In this document: piece after piece, positions 36,349 to 47,874 of the stretch
Position numbering within the stretch: the stretch's first letter is position 1
How the letters are laid out: each line of letters opens with the position of its first letter
NCBI GenBank assembly: GCA_038496445.1
Contig: JALMLS010000075.1
Span: 124,001 to 188,000 of the forward strand
Length of the DNA: 64,000 nucleotides
Origin: Trichosphaerium sp. ATCC 40318
Lineage: Eukaryota > Protista > Tubulinea
Direction of reading: 5' to 3'
Position numbers and translations under genes: made by a program
The notes under the pieces: model-generated
The model's database searches: none
The model's input: only the letters and a program-made list of their open reading frames with translations
What the model was told of the DNA's origin: nothing

Positions 36349-39300
36349 TTAAGGTCTTGTTGCTATCCAGTATAGTGCATTAGTCTTTGGGTTACCGTTA
36401 TCATACTGGGTCAAGTTTTGTAAATCATTCCAAGCTGTATTTTTATCTAGAATAGCACTGTCCATCAACACGTACCCTCTTGTGAAAAAGAGTCAACAAC
36501 CACGCAAAAAATTCAAGAATAAAACAAGAAAGCAAACACAAAAACACCCTCGTACTTCCAAATATCTGCGATGTTTCCTGATAGTACTCTTGATAAGAAA
36601 CTATATTCATAAGTAACCCATGATGTAGGAGAAAGTAACCACTCTGTTATAGGGGTAAAAGGGAGCATTTGAATGCAATGAATGTATTCCATGTTTGAAC
36701 CGAACCATGTCGCATTATCCACTTTTGTTGACCATAGAATACCAACAATTGGATTAGCAAACTCAGGTGGATATATATCAGAGTTCCTAAATTAATTAAC
36801 ACAAAGTTAGACATAATCGTTTGGTTTGTGACTCGATAGAAAATATCAAATTTTTCTGTGTTTTTTTCACTTTTTGTTCGAATTTGTACGGTTTTATATG
36901 CCAGTATGTCTGAACTGATTGAATCTCTGTAGTCATCAATACACGACCTAAGTCTTCAATGTGTCCTTGATTTGTTGCAAGCCCCCATAAGTAAATCCCG
37001 CTACGCGTCCTTGTTAGGCTTTTTGGGATTGAAAAAAACCACGTGCTAAGTATATGATCAGTTATTTTCTAAGATAGATAAACTATTTTTCAATGTACCT
37101 AGTAGGCATGTACAGCTTCAGATGTTGATTCTTGGTTCTTTGAATCTTCAGAATAAGAGAAAAAAGTAAGAAATAGAACAGGCGTTTTTTTAAATGTTTT
37201 CTAGAACGTACCTGGAAATGTATCTAGTCCATTTGCCCAAGAGTGACCCAAGAACCTTAAAAAAATATTAAAGATCGTTTTTGGAGGTTGATCACGTGCC
37301 AGTTCTTATGTCTTGTTATAGGAAAGTACTCATCGTCTGCAGATGGATTTGCAATATCACGAATAAGTGCATTAACAAAAACAGCATGACTTGATACCCA
37401 TGAAGGATCAAACTTTGCTATTACTGCGGCACTATATATGTAATATCCATAGTGAAAGTCTAAGAGGTATGCATAAAAACAGAGGAGCAAATGACGTCAC
37501 AAATGTTCGCACGATGATCGTTATAATATCCATTTCCGAAATCAGCCGTTCCATCATTTAACCCTCTAGATGTGCATATACCACCCCAAGACTCATCGTA
37601 CATAAATTTATTAACATTGTTACCTTTAAACCAGATCTCAATGGCAGTCTAAACGTAAACATTAGCCAAAGGCAAATGAGTAAAATTACAGGTCGTCTTT
37701 TCGCTTGGTTTACCTTGAGTCGTTCTACCAGGTTGTTTCGTATTGTGACTTCACCGACTTGATCTGCTATTAGTGCTAATCTAGCTGAAGCTGATAGTGT
37801 CTTTCCGTAAGCGTATACATCAACCTAAAGTCAACAAACTTAGAATGTAAAAAACCCAAAACTTGCTGGAACAAAGTAGAGTTCCTGCTCAATAGTAGGC
37901 TATTCTTCAAAAAAAAGCTGAAACAGGTTTTTTATGATTTCGAGACAATGTTGTAATTGAATTATGAAAATAAGAAGGTGTACTGCAGGTTCTATAGGCC
38001 AATTTTGATCATCTTGAAGTGATGTTTTAATATCGTCTATCCTTGTTGGATCAATTGGTCTTGGGGCATCCCATCTAGATATGATGTTAATGTACTTTAT
38101 AATCTATACTCTTAGTATCGTACTGAACATCAGGTAGAGAATATTTAAGCGTCCAAGTGCTTAACAGTCATGTAAGAAAATTTTCAGAATATTGACGTTG
38201 GTTTCGAACAAAATTGCGTGCCTTCCTTGTACGCCTGTCATGTTTCCTTTGATTGTTCTGTATAATTGTCCAACCGATGCTATACTATTAAACAAAGGTA
38301 CTTGGTGAGGTAGAGCCATCATTAGGAGTTTATCAGCCTTTCCTTTTGTTTTCCAGTCAAAAGTCAATGATGCTGTTTTTTCCTATTTTGTTTTAATACA
38401 TTAACATATTCTGATTGTTTTGTACTGCTCTGTTCACTGCGTAAGTGATTTGTCCTCCAGTTGCGTATGTATCTACATGCTCGTCTATAATCTTCGCGCC
38501 ATCGGTTATATCGGGTATCATTGCTAACTGCAGTGTACCGTGCAGTCGTTTAGAAGTTTTTAATCCAACTTTGCAGAAATAAGGAATTTGGAATATTTAA
38601 ATAAGAAAAAAAACGAAACTCGAAAGGGACTGTAAGATACTCTTCTCTTTCTTGCGTACCAATGTTGTCCCACGAGAATTTTGGAGCCTTCCCTTTTGTT
38701 GTATATAGTTTCCATGTCTTTCCACTATTTAACTCTATCTCCAGAACCTTATCTAAACAAGAGATGAACGATTGTACTAACTTTTTAAAAAGGTAACATT
38801 GCGCTTACTTTGAATGCTCGATGGTTGATTTTGTTCATTCACACGGACAATTGCATGCACTGAAGAAAGCTGAGGAGATAGACCATTATATTTCAAGGTG
38901 ATATATGGAGACCCACGAACGATATATGCCTGCATGGTCAGCTCTTGGTGAGAAGTTAATAGATTGTTTCGTAGAATGAAAAACAAAAGAGTATTTGTGT
39001 TGACTAACCATTTGGGTATGTGAACCAGAGAATTGCTATAAAACATACAATTACAGCAACACCAACAATAGATACAATGACAACACAGCAATTTGTTTTT
39101 AAGAAAGCAGCATTAGGAGCGTCCAGGCCTCCACTTAATTTAGAGTACTCCGAATTTGATACCTCAGCATTTTCTTTTTGCCTAAAGAGGAAGTCACAAA
39201 TCACTAGGTGTTGCTTTGTTAAATTGTGAATTATGTATTTAATACCCTATTATTCTCATGGATTTCTCTTTCAGACGTTGTGCAGTTTCATGTTGACCAG

Positions 39301-40774
39301 TTAGCGTGAATGGTATCAACCATAATTTCGCATAAAATATAATCCAAACCAAATACACAAAAAAAAAAGCATAAACAGGCCATATCCCAGCAGTGACACC
39401 CATCATTCTCATACCGTCAGCTTTTAATTCGTTAGGCGATTATTGATCAGTTTGTTTTGCTTAGTGAGTACCTATCTCTACCACACCGGCCAAAGGTGCA
39501 GCAAGGAGTATAATCCAGTAGACAGTTTCGAGCCTTATTATCCATGGATTTTTTGAATAAAAATGTTTCATTATTAGTAGTGCAGCGTTACTTATAGGCA
39601 TCGCAAACGCTAATATAAACAAAGGGTATCCACTGTGTACATTCAGTTAATAAACAAAGGGTTTTCAAGTTGAGGTTTTCAAGAAGAACGAAAAAGGGTG
39701 TAAGCTTTTCGTACAGGATTTTGTGGAAATGGTTAGTCGTTGATACTTGCATATCACCATCAAAAAGTGATGTCAGTGTAAACCCTACAATCGATAATAC
39801 CAAGTTAATGGTTATACAAAGGAAAGAAGCTAAATATCTCCAGTTCCTGTAACAATAAACTGAGTTACTGAAAAAAAAAAACCATAAAATGCTCTTACGC
39901 ATCAAGTGAAGCTGGGTATTTAGCTGTGATGAGTGACAACATAACAAATACTCCCCACCCTAAGAACATTGCAAGTCCATGACCTTTTGGTAAGAGTACT
40001 AGAACAGGTGCTTTAGGACCGATGGTTTACTGTCAAACGAAGATATCTTACCACTTTTGTACCACTCTACCTGTACACCAAGTTCATCATAATCAACAAT
40101 TCTTTTCCCTTCTGCTTGTGAAGCTGTCACACTTATATCTGCTACGAAAATACTTGCGACGTGGGTCCCTGCAGCGAAGCTAACTGAGTCAGTTCATGCG
40201 ATAACAACAGTTAAAGTGTAGTCTTTCAACTGGAAGTATACAATCACGCAAGAGTGTTACATTATATTCATTGGGTACGTCATTGTGTTTCAAAAAAAAA
40301 ATACTAAAAACGTACTAATCAGGGTAACAAACTGTTATGCCCTTAGAGTCTACACGCGTCATATAGGGTAATGGCGCTACATAAGAGCGTTAAAATTACC
40401 TCGTGAACAATCAGGAAAACCCCTTATCAGCGTACAAAACTGCCACTTGGAGTTATCTAACACTGCATTCATCCAAAAAGAATGTGTAGGATAAGGTCTC
40501 TCGATTTTATCCCAAATCCTATTTTATTTGTAATCACGTGCGCGTATATTATTACGTTAACGAGTTACGCACGTTCCTGGTTTTTCAGGATGTGTTCTAT
40601 GAGGAAAAGGAGGGTTTGAAGTTGACACTGGTGTTTTTGACACACCGTGAGGTTTAGATACTATCGCATGTCAGTTACGGTACTATATGAGCTCTTGGTG
40701 GTATTTCTTACCGCAACGTGCTATATATAAAGCGCTTATAAGCGTCAATGATACCCACAAGAGTTTTAAAGCAT
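36349..40774 (-). CDS. GH81 endo-1,3(4)-beta-glucanase with in-frame six-TM cytochrome-b561-like insertion
   Basis: Signal peptide MLLKLLWVSLTLISALYIA; 'PYPTHSFWMN'; 'VRGSPYIT'; 'DFGNGYYNDH', 'FHYGY', 'RHKNWFLGHSWANG', catalytic 'NQESTSEA', 'IQMLPFTP'. Confidence 0.9.
39009..40010 (-). other. Five-exon, 753-nt multi-pass membrane module (cytochrome-b561-like) inside the GH81 gene
   Basis: Exons 40010-39899, 39846-39715, 39632-39472, 39420-39246 and 39181-39009, all GT-AG and in frame; 'HGLAMFLGWGVF', 'HKILGYPLFIL', 'EIADG'. Confidence 0.75.
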
Positions 40775-41235
40775 TGGGGCGCGCCATTATTCAAAATAAT
40801 GATCGTAACGTCACCGGTACAAGACAATATGCCAACGGCTTTAAGTTCTTGGTTAAGGCAATAAATAAAATGTAGACAAGTCGCTTTGATGTGCTACATT
40901 TTAGTTTAATAAATTTCGCCCTCTGAACAGCTTGCACTGCGAATCCATGGTGCATTGCAATATCAGCGTAAGCAGAAACAACAGATGAGCTGTCATCAGA
41001 CTCGTAGGCGCTTGTGCAGAGTCCTAGGCAGAAAGCGGCAAATAGGAAAGAAGGGTGCTTTGAGTTGTAGTAAACGAACAAGTGAAGAGATGGAGAATAC
41101 TTTTATTGTAATAAGGGTAATACAAAAGGAGAGAAACCGCCTTCTAGACTTCGAAATTAAAAAAGTCGAGGGATTGAAAAATTGGGTAAAATTGTGGTGA
41201 ATTCACACCGGTGGTATGTTACGATTGATTTGATC

Positions 41236-41973
41236 TCAATCGGAATGTTCTACGCCACATTCAAAAGAACATGCACGTGTTGGTAGGTTTTTGTTGCATT
41301 TTCTGATGCATTGTTGACCTTGAGGACATCCTGTTCTTGTGCACTGTTCTACAAGTCTGTTTGTCTTCGTTGCTTGTTGTTTAGGTGTGCATGTGTATTC
41401 GCAATCTACTGTGAAAGTAGTTGCTCTCTTGCATGATGTAGCAGTGCACTCTTGACCTTCAGGGCATCCGTCCATACCGCACATGAATTGCCATTTCTCG
41501 ATATTAGTATCATCGCCTGCTGTAGCTTCGGTTTCAGCGTGTTGTTCTTCTTCTTGTTCTTCTTCTTCTGTAGGAACCTCAGGGCAAGGACATTGACCAT
41601 GGCATTTTGGAGTGATACCGTGAAGCCGTCCAGTTGTTTTGGAAACGCAGTTAACATAACATCTACAAGAAAGATAAGAATCAGCAACCGAAAAAAAAAA
41701 GAGATAAAAAGTTGTTTGAACCGCAATTCAGCGGGAGTTCAAGAACTTACTTATTAGGATATGTAATGCCGTCACTACCGCATACTTGTTCGAATTTATG
41801 GTGTTGACAAATACGCTGGCATGAACTTGCGTTTGAAGAGTGTACGAGTGTAAACTAGAGGAAATGAAGTCAGTTTTTGTATTCAGTGTTCAATTCTTGT
41901 TCTTGAGGTTCAAGTTTCAACGTACAATGACACAGGCCAGTGTAAGTATTCTAAGTGATTGTGTTTGGGCCAT
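41236..41973 (-). CDS. Small secreted Kazal-domain / Cys-rich protein; 3 exons
   Basis: Hydrophobic leader; 'CQRIC...QVCGSDGITYPN.CYVNC' Kazal motif; two C..GCP.GQ.C repeats. Confidence 0.8.
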
Positions 41974-42531: not shown

Positions 42532-44729
42532 TTATTCTTTCTTTTTTGATAAACCAACAAGTTGTTCTATTGTTTCTTTAGGTAAAGACCTTGGAAACTC
42601 ATCTGGTTTTGAAAGACTTTCAATCTCAACAAAATCCTTCAAACTACCTCCAAACGAAGCACCATAGTTTATTAATATTTGCTGACCGATTTTTATGTCA
42701 GTTATCGCAATAAAAACTGCCTAATTCAAGTTGTAAGTCCTCAGAAGAAAAAAATTCCCAAAAAGGAAAGTAAGAAAATAGTTGTAAAGTTTTCGGGATT
42801 TTACAACGGGTTCAGATTCGCCTTTGTTCTACATATGTGTAGTATCGTTTTATATAAATATTCAGACGTTATTTTATACATCATTGAGTTAAAATTTAAA
42901 GAGTGACAGAAAAAAAAAGAAAAAAACTGTGACGATTCGTAACATACCTGTTCAGCGCCTTTATCCATTATACATTCCGCTTGTGCATTAGGGACCTTAC
43001 TGTGGTTAGCCATAGCAGCTAGATTTCCTAATTATGAACAGTTAGTGCGTTTTAACGTCAAGGAAAAGTTGTTGTCGAAAAAACGTGTATTGCACGCGTA
43101 AAAACTTCGTAAGAAAATTTTCGATTGACTTGTCAGAAATGTATTGTGTCAAAGTATGTTTCTTACTATACTCTGAAGCATCTAGAATCATATCTTCTAC
43201 GCCAGATGTAACAGCATAAGATCTATTAGGTTGCTCTACATCCTTGACAACACGACCACCATACTTGACAATAAAATCACCTTTTTTAAACTCCTTCTTT
43301 GCGAAAATACCGTAACCGATAACATCGCTTATTTTTGATAACACAAGATTTTCATCACCACTAGTAGTATTCATAATCTTTGTATACTTTTCTCTAAACT
43401 CAGCATCCTTTGACGTTATTTGCATACCAGAAAACAAAAGTTCTTCAATGTACATAAAACTACACAAAGGATGAGGCGTCCATTTAACCTAAACGTTATT
43501 AATAATAAGAAGAACAAGAAGAAGAAATAAAACGTGTTTCAGTGGGACGTTTTCGTTATACTCAGCGTGAGTAAAACACAAAAAAACTTCGTGACGTTTT
43601 TTTTTTTCTTGTATTCTTTTTTTCTTTTTTTCAGAAAACTGTCTGTTCCTTGGTTCCTATTTTTATGAAAAACATAAGTACCTTTAGTGTTTCTTCAAAT
43701 TGCTTCGTTTCCCATGATTCTAGCTCTTTTGTCTCGTTATTGTAGTATGTAATGGAGTGACCTTTAAAGTGGTTTTTTGGTGGTAGCATTTGAAGCATAC
43801 GCGCAAAATCAAGCGGAGTGCCTAGATTACGCTTGATAAGTGAAAAATTAAGCGTTATCAAAAGAAAAACCAAAAAAAAAAACGCGATTAAAAAATTCGC
43901 TGAAATTCGTTTGTTAGACGTCTATCTATTGATTCGTTACCTTCAAATTTATCTTTACCATACATGGTTGCGCCAGCCTTAAGTAGAGCCCACCTATTAG
44001 AATTTAAAAAAATTTCAGAGCCAAAACAAATTCTGATTTTTTGAACAAATTGCTCGTACATGATTGCCACATTCTCAATAAACACTGCCAAATGGAATGG
44101 TGTAAACCCAGTAACGAAATCACCCTTATCTACAAAGTTTTTTCCTCCATTCTCGAGCACTAACTCGACCATCTTGACATTTCCTGTTAATACCTACGCT
44201 ATACGTTTTAATACAAGTCACAATCATGTGGTAGAGCGTACAGCGTATATCAATGCCGATTTATCTTTGCTCAAGTCGCGAATTTCGTCACCTTTTGAAA
44301 GCGTCAGAATAATACAAAAAGAATGAAAACTGGTAGCCAGTGCGTAGTTTTAAAGTACAATGGCGTTATTGAGTGTTTTTCTATTCGGAACCTTCTTGAA
44401 ATGACCTTTGGCTATCCTTCTTTATCTGTAGCTCTGCTGTGTCCACGTCGTTTGATAGTATAAGTTCTTGTATTGTTGTCAAGCCTTCTCCCATTACATT
44501 TTGCATTTCGGTTGAAAGCTTCTTAGCGAACGCTTTTCCTCTCATTACATCAAAATCAAAGCAAGCTAGGAAATAACTGAAGAAATTATGTTAAAAAGCG
44601 TTAATTTTTATCTACATACGATGCCCACTGTGTTGGAGCAGGTTTCTTCGCAATTAATGGGCATTTCTCATCTCCAAGGCATACTTCCTTTAAAAACAAT
44701 TTGTACCACTTTGATTCTGAAAGGGACAT
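42532..44729 (-). CDS. Ankyrin-repeat + SET-domain protein (putative lysine methyltransferase)
   Basis: Ankyrin 'GFTPFHLAV', 'GTPLDFA'; SET 'IGYGIFAKKEFKKGDFIVKYGG', 'LDASEY|RNLAAMANHSKVPNA', 'QILINYG'. Confidence 0.85.
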
Positions 44730-46742: not shown

Positions 46743-47874
46743 GGGAGCTGTGTCTGTTATGAAGGTACGCAGTTTTGATTAAAAGGTCATTCATGCCAAC
46801 TTAAAATCATGGACTTAGGAAAAGAGGAAGTTCTCAATCTATTTCTGGTGTTGTCGTCAACAGATCTCTATAACCGACGCTCGCATATACTTTAAATATA
46901 GTCTAAACTGTAATTGTTAACAAAAGTTTGTGGGAAGGAGTAAAAACGCCGAAATGAAATTTCATACAAAAGTTGATGGTTTATACACGTCATTTGATTG
47001 TGGCACTTTTTGTTTCTTGCCCATCTTTTGCTGACGCATTCGCATATTGGTTCACACTTTAAACACTGGAAGTATTTAGGTTAGCGTATTATGTACTACG
47101 TTAAAGTACATACAAAACCTGTAAAACCGATAAGGGTATGGAGCAAAAAAATCTCAAAAGAACTTCGCCAAAAACGGCAGACATCGTAATTGTTTAGTAT
47201 TTAGAAAAGTTGATCGTAAGAAAGGCAAGAGAGAACTATACGCTGTGGTTTGCGAGGGATTTTAAAGATCGGGTAATGCTGCCAATAACGAAATCACGAA
47301 ATGACGCTAGAGAAAAACTAAAGTGAAATCACGTGCGTGACAGACGTAAAGAAGTCTAGGAAAAATATTTTTCTGCATTTATACCGCACTTTGTACTGCG
47401 CAGGATTGCGGATATTAATATTGCTGTCGCTCGTATTACCAACGTTTCTCTTGTGTACGTAGTACTGATAGGCAGTTGCGAAAACAAACTATGAAGTACA
47501 CCATACAAAACTGCAGTTTTGTGATTTTACTATTGTAATTCTCGCAACTTGGTTTCGTGTTAATCTGTCTTCAGGCCGCGAAGAAAAACCTACGACTTCA
47601 ATCGAGATTCTAAATCAATTACTCACGCTTGATTGTGTGAATGATAAAAACCCCAATAAAACAGCACAATAGTTACATCTTCAACAATTCTCATCGTTTT
47701 TTGTTTCACCAACTGGATGGAGTATTGTTTGTTATGTCATTAAATAACGCGAATGTGAGTTACTCTTGCGAGTAATTTTTTTAGCTTTCATGAGCCTCCC
47801 ACTATTTTTTAGTTTTTAAGTTGTCTTTTTACAAGTATATTTTATTTGTCTTTTCATTCAACACTTCCGAGCCT

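Follow-up and report, generated by a model that had tools for sequence, protein, structure and literature searches.

Two groups of described proteins are closest to the gene reported here, the GH81 endo-β-1,3-glucanases and the cytochrome b561 proteins. The GH81 enzymes known to us, among them RmLam81A (structure 4K35), the fungal Eng1/Eng2 and BH0236, are soluble or carry separate binding modules. The b561 proteins are defined by two hemes which carry electrons across the membrane. In the classical six-helix members (Dcytb, chromaffin granule b561, AtCytb561-B) the four-helix heme core presents four histidines from helices 2–5, and FNWHPVLM is a local motif of this group. In the CYBDOM proteins (Drosophila CG8399, human FRRS1/SDR2, plant CRR/HYP1) an outer β-sandwich, the DOMON domain, immediately precedes the b561 core; as exemplified by CG8399, the ligands H1–H4 are found on helices 1–4, and the non-cytoplasmic heme has H1 and H3 as its ligands, the cytoplasmic heme H2 and H4 (PMC10691727). 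Room for the outer heme is provided by a small residue at H1+7 and a glycine at H3+4, and the hallmarks of the inner heme site are Arg/Lys at H1+20, Gln at H3+14, Gly/Ala at H3+18 and Gly at H4+4; a fly protein without the ligand histidines was dropped from the dataset of the same study (PMC10691727). In the literature, as far as our incomplete coverage of it extends, we found no paper that connects b561 and GH81 or reports a naturally mono-heme b561.

The window, i.e., the whole stretch of 64,000 nucleotides from Trichosphaerium sp. ATCC 40318 that was analysed, has a base composition of 37.5% G+C and short introns, and the DNA is eukaryotic in character. One intron-rich gene occupies the minus strand between 40787 and 36349; its exons were taken from the three-frame display and their ends were fixed by script. 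Every junction of the gene model is GT..AG and the phases are consistent; introns measure 51–82 nt, plus one of 216 nt. The spliced model was assembled for numbering, hydropathy and motif scoring, and the database searches were run exon by exon. Exon 1 (40712..40787, minus strand) begins with the ATG at 40787, encodes the signal peptide MARPNALKLLWVSLTLISALYIARC, with a hydrophobic stretch at residues 5–27, and is bounded by a GT donor at 40711. Exons 2–4 (40660-40573, 40518-40400 and 40183-40052, minus strand; GT..AG, consistent phases) cover the initial portion of the GH81 N-terminal domain and end in ...VQVEWYKS, and the remaining GH81 exons (36349..38943, minus strand) encode the rest of that domain and the catalytic C-terminal domain, down to the stop codon at 36351-36349. 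To stay in the GH81 frame from ...AVNRA to EKTASLTF..., the model has to assume an intron of 43 nt (GTACAA...AAATAG; 38383-38425, minus strand); no other intron of the gene is as short, and the exon boundary at this place is uncertain.

Exon-wise Pfam searches found the GH81 N-terminal domain (PF03639; best E 8.9e-10) and the C-terminal catalytic domain (PF17652; best E 5.6e-18) in order along the gene, as in the described enzymes. Upstream of a five-exon cassette, the translation of exon 3 gives a weak match to positions 13–31 of PF03639 (E 0.27); downstream of it, the matches cover positions 125–167, 166–192 and 244–313 of PF03639 and positions 75–112, 114–166, 198–232 and 236–310 of PF17652. 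In a search of PDB sequences the post-cassette exons align to residues 157–188 and 478–531 of 4K35, and there are alignments to other solved GH81 enzymes as well. The stretches YYNDHHFHYGYY and NQESTSEA (ESTSE) can be read in the sequence, corresponding to the YNDHHFHYGY and ESxSE stretches of GH81 enzymes; the Asp in YNDHH and the two Glu in ESxSE are the putative catalytic acid residues, a role attributed to them in work on RmLam81A. Given that GH81 matches occur before and after the cassette and in the right order, the six-helix block encoded by the cassette is an insert inside the N-terminal domain of the glucanase: in contrast to the known GH81 enzymes, a membrane module of 247 residues interrupts this domain. 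No DOMON domain was matched by the exons preceding the cassette in exon-wise Pfam searches; where CYBDOM proteins have DOMON, part of the GH81 β-sandwich stands in its place.

The cassette consists of exons b1–b5 (39998-39009, minus strand; 741 nt, 247 codons, model residues 139–385), and its hydropathy profile has six hydrophobic helices. Exon b1 (39899..39998, minus strand) encodes helix 1, VLLPKGHGLAMFLGWGVFVMLSLITAKYPASLD, the best match to helix 1 of CG8399 in the whole model. Exon b2 (39715..39846, minus strand) encodes helix 2 (NWRYLASFLCITINLVLSIVGFTLTSL), an outer loop and the beginning of helix 3 (NHFHKIL), and exon b3 (39472..39632, minus strand) the rest of helix 3, an inner loop (KHFYSKNP) and helix 4 (WIIRLETVYWIILLAAPLAGVVEI). 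Helix 5 and the start of a cytosolic linker of about 50 residues are found in exon b4 (39246..39420, minus strand), and exon b5 (39009..39181, minus strand) carries the remainder of the linker and helix 6 (CCVVIVSIVGVAVIVCFIAILWF; hydropathy peak 3.34), by which the chain is predicted to return to the outside. The predicted inner loops contain 13 Lys/Arg and the outer loops 2; together with the signal peptide and the even number of helices, this places two histidines, His145 and His213, on the outer, glucanase-side face. An even number of helices also suits a loop insert with both ends outside. The CYBDOM core, in contrast, is not set within another domain; the core found here is, and so needs an extra return helix.

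Database searches with the individual exons did not reveal the ancestry of the module. Pfam gave no b561 match for any of the cassette exons (33–58 residues each), nothing relevant was found among PDB sequences for b1, b2 and b3, and the scores of b2 and b3 in the protein atlas were at chance level. Exon b3 had no relative in a search of 1.8 billion proteins, its sole match there (P0001) being a repetitive protein that we rejected as spurious; scans of metagenome loci with b3 and b4 found no relative, and tblastn with all exons found no paralog within the window. A query of 53 residues would miss relatives below about 50% identity, and a blank search is therefore no proof of a unique insert. 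Since the single-exon searches were silent on b561, the description of the family in PMC10691727 was used instead.

Two kinds of comparison were made on this basis. The pattern tested was a His with Gly at +7 followed, 64–74 residues later, by a His with Gly at +4; it is present in the module and in 0.17–0.25% of composition-preserving shuffles. The helices were scored, ungapped and with BLOSUM62, against CG8399-type sequences from the supplementary alignment of PMC10691727, with reference rows which were picked after inspection and whose source, the machine-read text of a PDF, may hold reading errors. For helix 1, the CYBDOM sequence LHGAFMIAAWIGTTSLGIIFARYFK compares with GHGLAMFLGWGVFVMLSLITAKYPA here (score 28, 8 of 25 residues identical), and for helix 3 NPHAILGCITTGLAFIQPFGAL compares with HFHKILGYPLFILAFAMPISNA (score 23, 8 of 22 identical). 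In neither case does any other position of the model score higher; each score is reached by about 60 of 200,000 shuffles of the segment concerned (~3e-4), and among the six-frame positions of the window 1 of 34,037 reaches the score for helix 1 and 0 of 39,414 that for helix 3. An unrelated stretch, RATAILISAILRSTKCGINAEKYFS (47359-47433, minus strand), scores 30 against the helix 1 motif of CG8399 without having the His, and this shows how high chance goes for a single short motif. The likeness extends to the CYBDOM motifs LHG..M..AW.G...ARY in helix 1 and NPHAILG......FIQP in helix 3, the Q of FIQP being Met here; what the two have in common can be written as HG..M..[AG]W...A[RK]Y and H.ILG.....LAF..P. 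Helix 2 scores 1 against CG8399 and helix 4 scores 2, the latter reached by 583 of 100,000 shuffles. The classical motifs FNWHPVLM and YSLHSW are not seen in the module (YSLHSW appears as YSLSW, its His dropped, in the machine-read alignment rows). We conclude from this motif-level evidence that the module is a putative descendant of a CYBDOM-type b561 core. The first-pass annotation had described a b561-like insert: this is supported and can be made more precise, the likeness being to the CYBDOM/FRRS1 type. Helices 2 and 4 are nearly without similarity.

The residues expected around an outer heme are present. On the minus strand, GHGLAM (within KGHGLAM) starts at 39984, and HFHKIL occupies 39731-39714. 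His145 (39979..39981, minus strand) occupies the outer ligand position H1 according to the hallmark positions of PMC10691727, and His213 (39723..39725, minus strand) occupies the outer ligand position H3 according to the match of helix 3 to CG8399-type sequence. The distance between them is 68 residues, compared with 70 in Dcytb and 71 in CG8399, in keeping with the H1–H3 spacing of about 70 in CYBDOM proteins; each of them stands 1–2 residues ahead of a hydrophobic stretch, on the predicted outer face, which agrees with the spacing of H1 and H3 in the eukaryotic cytochrome b561 family (PF03188) and with their placement on alternate helices, at the non-cytoplasmic ends. Both of the small residues which make room for the outer heme are found, Gly152 at H1+7 (39960-39958) and Gly217 at H3+4 (39631-39629, the first complete codon in exon b3), and the same two glycines are a feature of the classical proteins, in which H1 and H3 likewise bind the outer heme. 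A polar residue is kept at H3-2 (His211, 39731-39729). The propionate-binding positions H3-5 and H3-4 are Thr208/Thr209, and not the usual Asn/His and Met/Phe/Leu. The first-pass annotation had read histidines at the start of TM1 (GHGLAM) and of TM3 (HFHKILG), had assigned the first and third b561 histidines to the outer heme and the second and fourth to the cytosolic one, and had placed the pair on the same side as the glucanase; the letters themselves, the family description in PMC10691727 and the topology (signal peptide, helix count and distribution of Lys/Arg) agree with it on these points.

The module has five histidines in all, His145, His211, His213, His239 and His313. His239 (39565-39563, within KHFYSKNP) stands where helix 3 ends on the cytosolic side, while His313 (TGQHETAQ) belongs to the cytosolic linker encoded by exon b4, both away from the b561 ligand positions. 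His211 was considered as H3 and rejected, as the Gly at +4 would be lost. The heme site of the ferric reductases was considered as well: in the NOX/FRE family each of two helices carries a pair of His spaced by about 13 residues, and this candidate was rejected because no such arrangement is seen here.

The inner heme site presents a different picture. The absence of His from TM2 (WRYLAS, 39842-39825) and from TM4 (RLETVYW, 39535-39515) had been pointed out before and is confirmed, neither stretch containing one; RLETVYW lies beyond the span of 39715-39985 to which that observation was attached, yet belongs to the same module. Helix 2 (NWRYLASFLC...) and helix 4 (WIIRLETVYWIILLAAPLAG) are in fact without any His. 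The place of H2 is taken by Ala178-Ser179 (39825..39830, minus strand), with Trp174 kept four residues before Ala178, where CG8399-type proteins have W-F-A-W-H (alignment rows of PMC10691727). When the helix 4 motif of CG8399 is aligned at its best without gaps, its His falls on Ile257, and the place of H4 is taken by Ile256-Ile257 (39509..39514, minus strand), with Arg249 and Trp255 before it and the small Ala260/261 at +4. Of the four conserved His by which PF03188 is recognised, the module has H1 and H3. Two further inner positions have changed: H3+14, Gln in b561, is Met227 (39601-39599, minus strand), and H3+18, Gly/Ala in b561, is Asn231 (39589-39587, minus strand). H3+18 is one of the two inner positions for small residues; the other, H4+4, is probably Ala260/261 under an uncertain alignment. 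Lys165 (H1+20; 39921-39919, minus strand), Trp174 and Arg249 are inner-face residues that are still present, and their equivalents line the inner site in CG8399 (PMC10691727). In comparison with the CYBDOM proteins, H2, H4, the Gln at H3+14 and the Gly/Ala at H3+18 are all absent; and unlike the classical proteins, which have four His and two hemes and carry electrons across the membrane, this module probably cannot do so.

It had been proposed that the loss of one complete ligand pair looks selective. The count of histidines does not by itself bear this out: if two of four were lost at random, a complete pair would be gone in two of six cases (1 in 3), and the count alone is thus no sign of selection. 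The accompanying residues are divided in the same way as the histidines, and they make the better case for selective retention, in that the outer-site hallmarks are all kept, several of the inner-site ones are lost, and the only helices still recognisable are 1 and 3, which carry the outer ligands. An outer-heme-only reading of the candidate site is therefore plausible, and partly supported by this division.

The reading that we prefer, and to which we would give an even chance, is that of a b561-derived anchor which keeps one heme, on its outer face, and through which electrons no longer cross the membrane; this heme would serve the anchor as a structural cofactor or would be a local redox centre. 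From the residues, the topology and the similarity of the motifs we infer a fold in which a CYBDOM/FRRS1-type b561 core would be followed by the fifth helix, the cytosolic linker and the return helix. Lying inside the N-terminal β-sandwich, the cassette would tie a GH81 endo-β-1,3-glucanase of the secreted type to a membrane, on its outer (or phagosome-lumen) side. The inner site would have decayed, with H2 replaced by Ala/Ser, H4 by Ile, the Gln that positions H4 by Met and a room-making Gly/Ala by Asn, and with the recognisable similarity of helices 2 and 4 gone; the outer site, in so far as sequence can tell, appears intact (His145, His213, both glycines and the polar residue at H3-2). One b-type heme would then most likely be held between helices 1 and 3, on the side of the glucanase, and electrons from cytosolic ascorbate would no longer be carried across the membrane.

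A module of the same descent might also bind no heme, acting as a polytopic anchor only, with its His and glycines as relics of ancestry; we consider this possible and rather unlikely. Two of the four universal ligands have been lost, helices 2 and 4, which would wall the pocket, are unrecognisable, the residues at H3-5 and H3-4 are of an unusual kind, and H4+18 cannot be placed on a small residue; moreover, the protein search with exon b3 and the metagenome scans with b3 and b4 provided no ortholog showing constraint on the histidines. All of this would be expected of a relic, whereas the retention of all four outer-site hallmarks, with several inner ones lost, would not, and conservation is far stronger in helices 1 and 3 than in helices 2 and 4, suggesting uneven constraint and not uniform decay.

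Improbable, in our estimate, is a cassette that stands outside the main product of the glucanase gene, because it is mostly skipped or because the model is mis-joined, so that the chimera would be rare or not made at all. The cassette is entered and left in phase 1, by which the reading frame is preserved if b1–b5 are skipped: ...VEWYKS would be joined in frame to ELTMQAYIVRG. This, and the absence of any protein with exon b3 among 1.8 billion representatives, is what a skipped cassette would predict. Against it there are five consecutive open exons with canonical splice sites and with introns of the same 51–82 nt as in the rest of the gene, 247 codons without a stop or frameshift, a G+C content by codon position of 0.44/0.38/0.32, which is coding-like and matches the rest of the gene, and an even number of helices, as suits an insert in a loop with both ends outside. 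The phase 1-1 arrangement fits exon shuffling into a phase-1 intron, and a cassette that can be skipped would allow soluble and membrane-bound isoforms of the glucanase.

There is a very slim chance that the module is a generic six-helix segment unrelated to b561 and that the positions of its His and Gly are coincidental. While the single-exon family and structure searches report no b561, and one unrelated six-frame position reaches 30 against the helix 1 motif, coincidence would have to account for two independent motif matches (~3e-4 each) in the right order and with a spacing of 68 against 70–71, located at the outer ends of helices 1 and 3 and conforming to a pattern set beforehand in the literature. 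Slimmest of all is the chance of two hemes with non-canonical inner ligands such as His239 with Tyr254 or Met227, since, although these three residues lie toward the inner half and the Lys165, Trp174 and Arg249 of the inner-site lining are kept, helices 2 and 4 have no His, H3+18 is Asn, the Gln that positions H4 is lost, and basic residues at the inner helix ends are expected in any membrane protein by the positive-inside rule.

If the outer-heme-only reading is correct, a natural b561 of this kind, built into a glucanase that faces outward, would be evidence that half of the fold lends itself to separate reuse. It would likewise offer a rare example of exon shuffling that placed a polytopic membrane domain in a loop of a soluble enzyme domain, an origin made testable by the phase 1-1 arrangement. 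A further step, by which the outer heme would act as a sensor of redox state, heme or gas, with the local redox state switching the cutting of glucan on the cell surface or within the phagosome, is decidedly improbable, and a sensor or local redox role of either kind is put forward here speculatively; a sensor heme wired into the β-sandwich of a glucanase would, if true, couple a carbohydrate enzyme to a membrane cytochrome in a new way. The gene has an unusual architecture and a coherent pattern of residues; as this is a single predicted gene, the practical value is limited for now.

Two features were observed in the sequence neighbouring the glucanase gene. Just upstream of it, at 41236-41484 on the minus strand, there is a cysteine-rich open frame of 82 residues (MCGMDGCPEGQECTATSCKR...), possibly an exon of a neighbouring gene for a secreted protein. 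At 43042-44172, also on the minus strand, the list of open reading frames has open frames which include an ankyrin-repeat-like stretch (TPFHLAV...LLKAGA).
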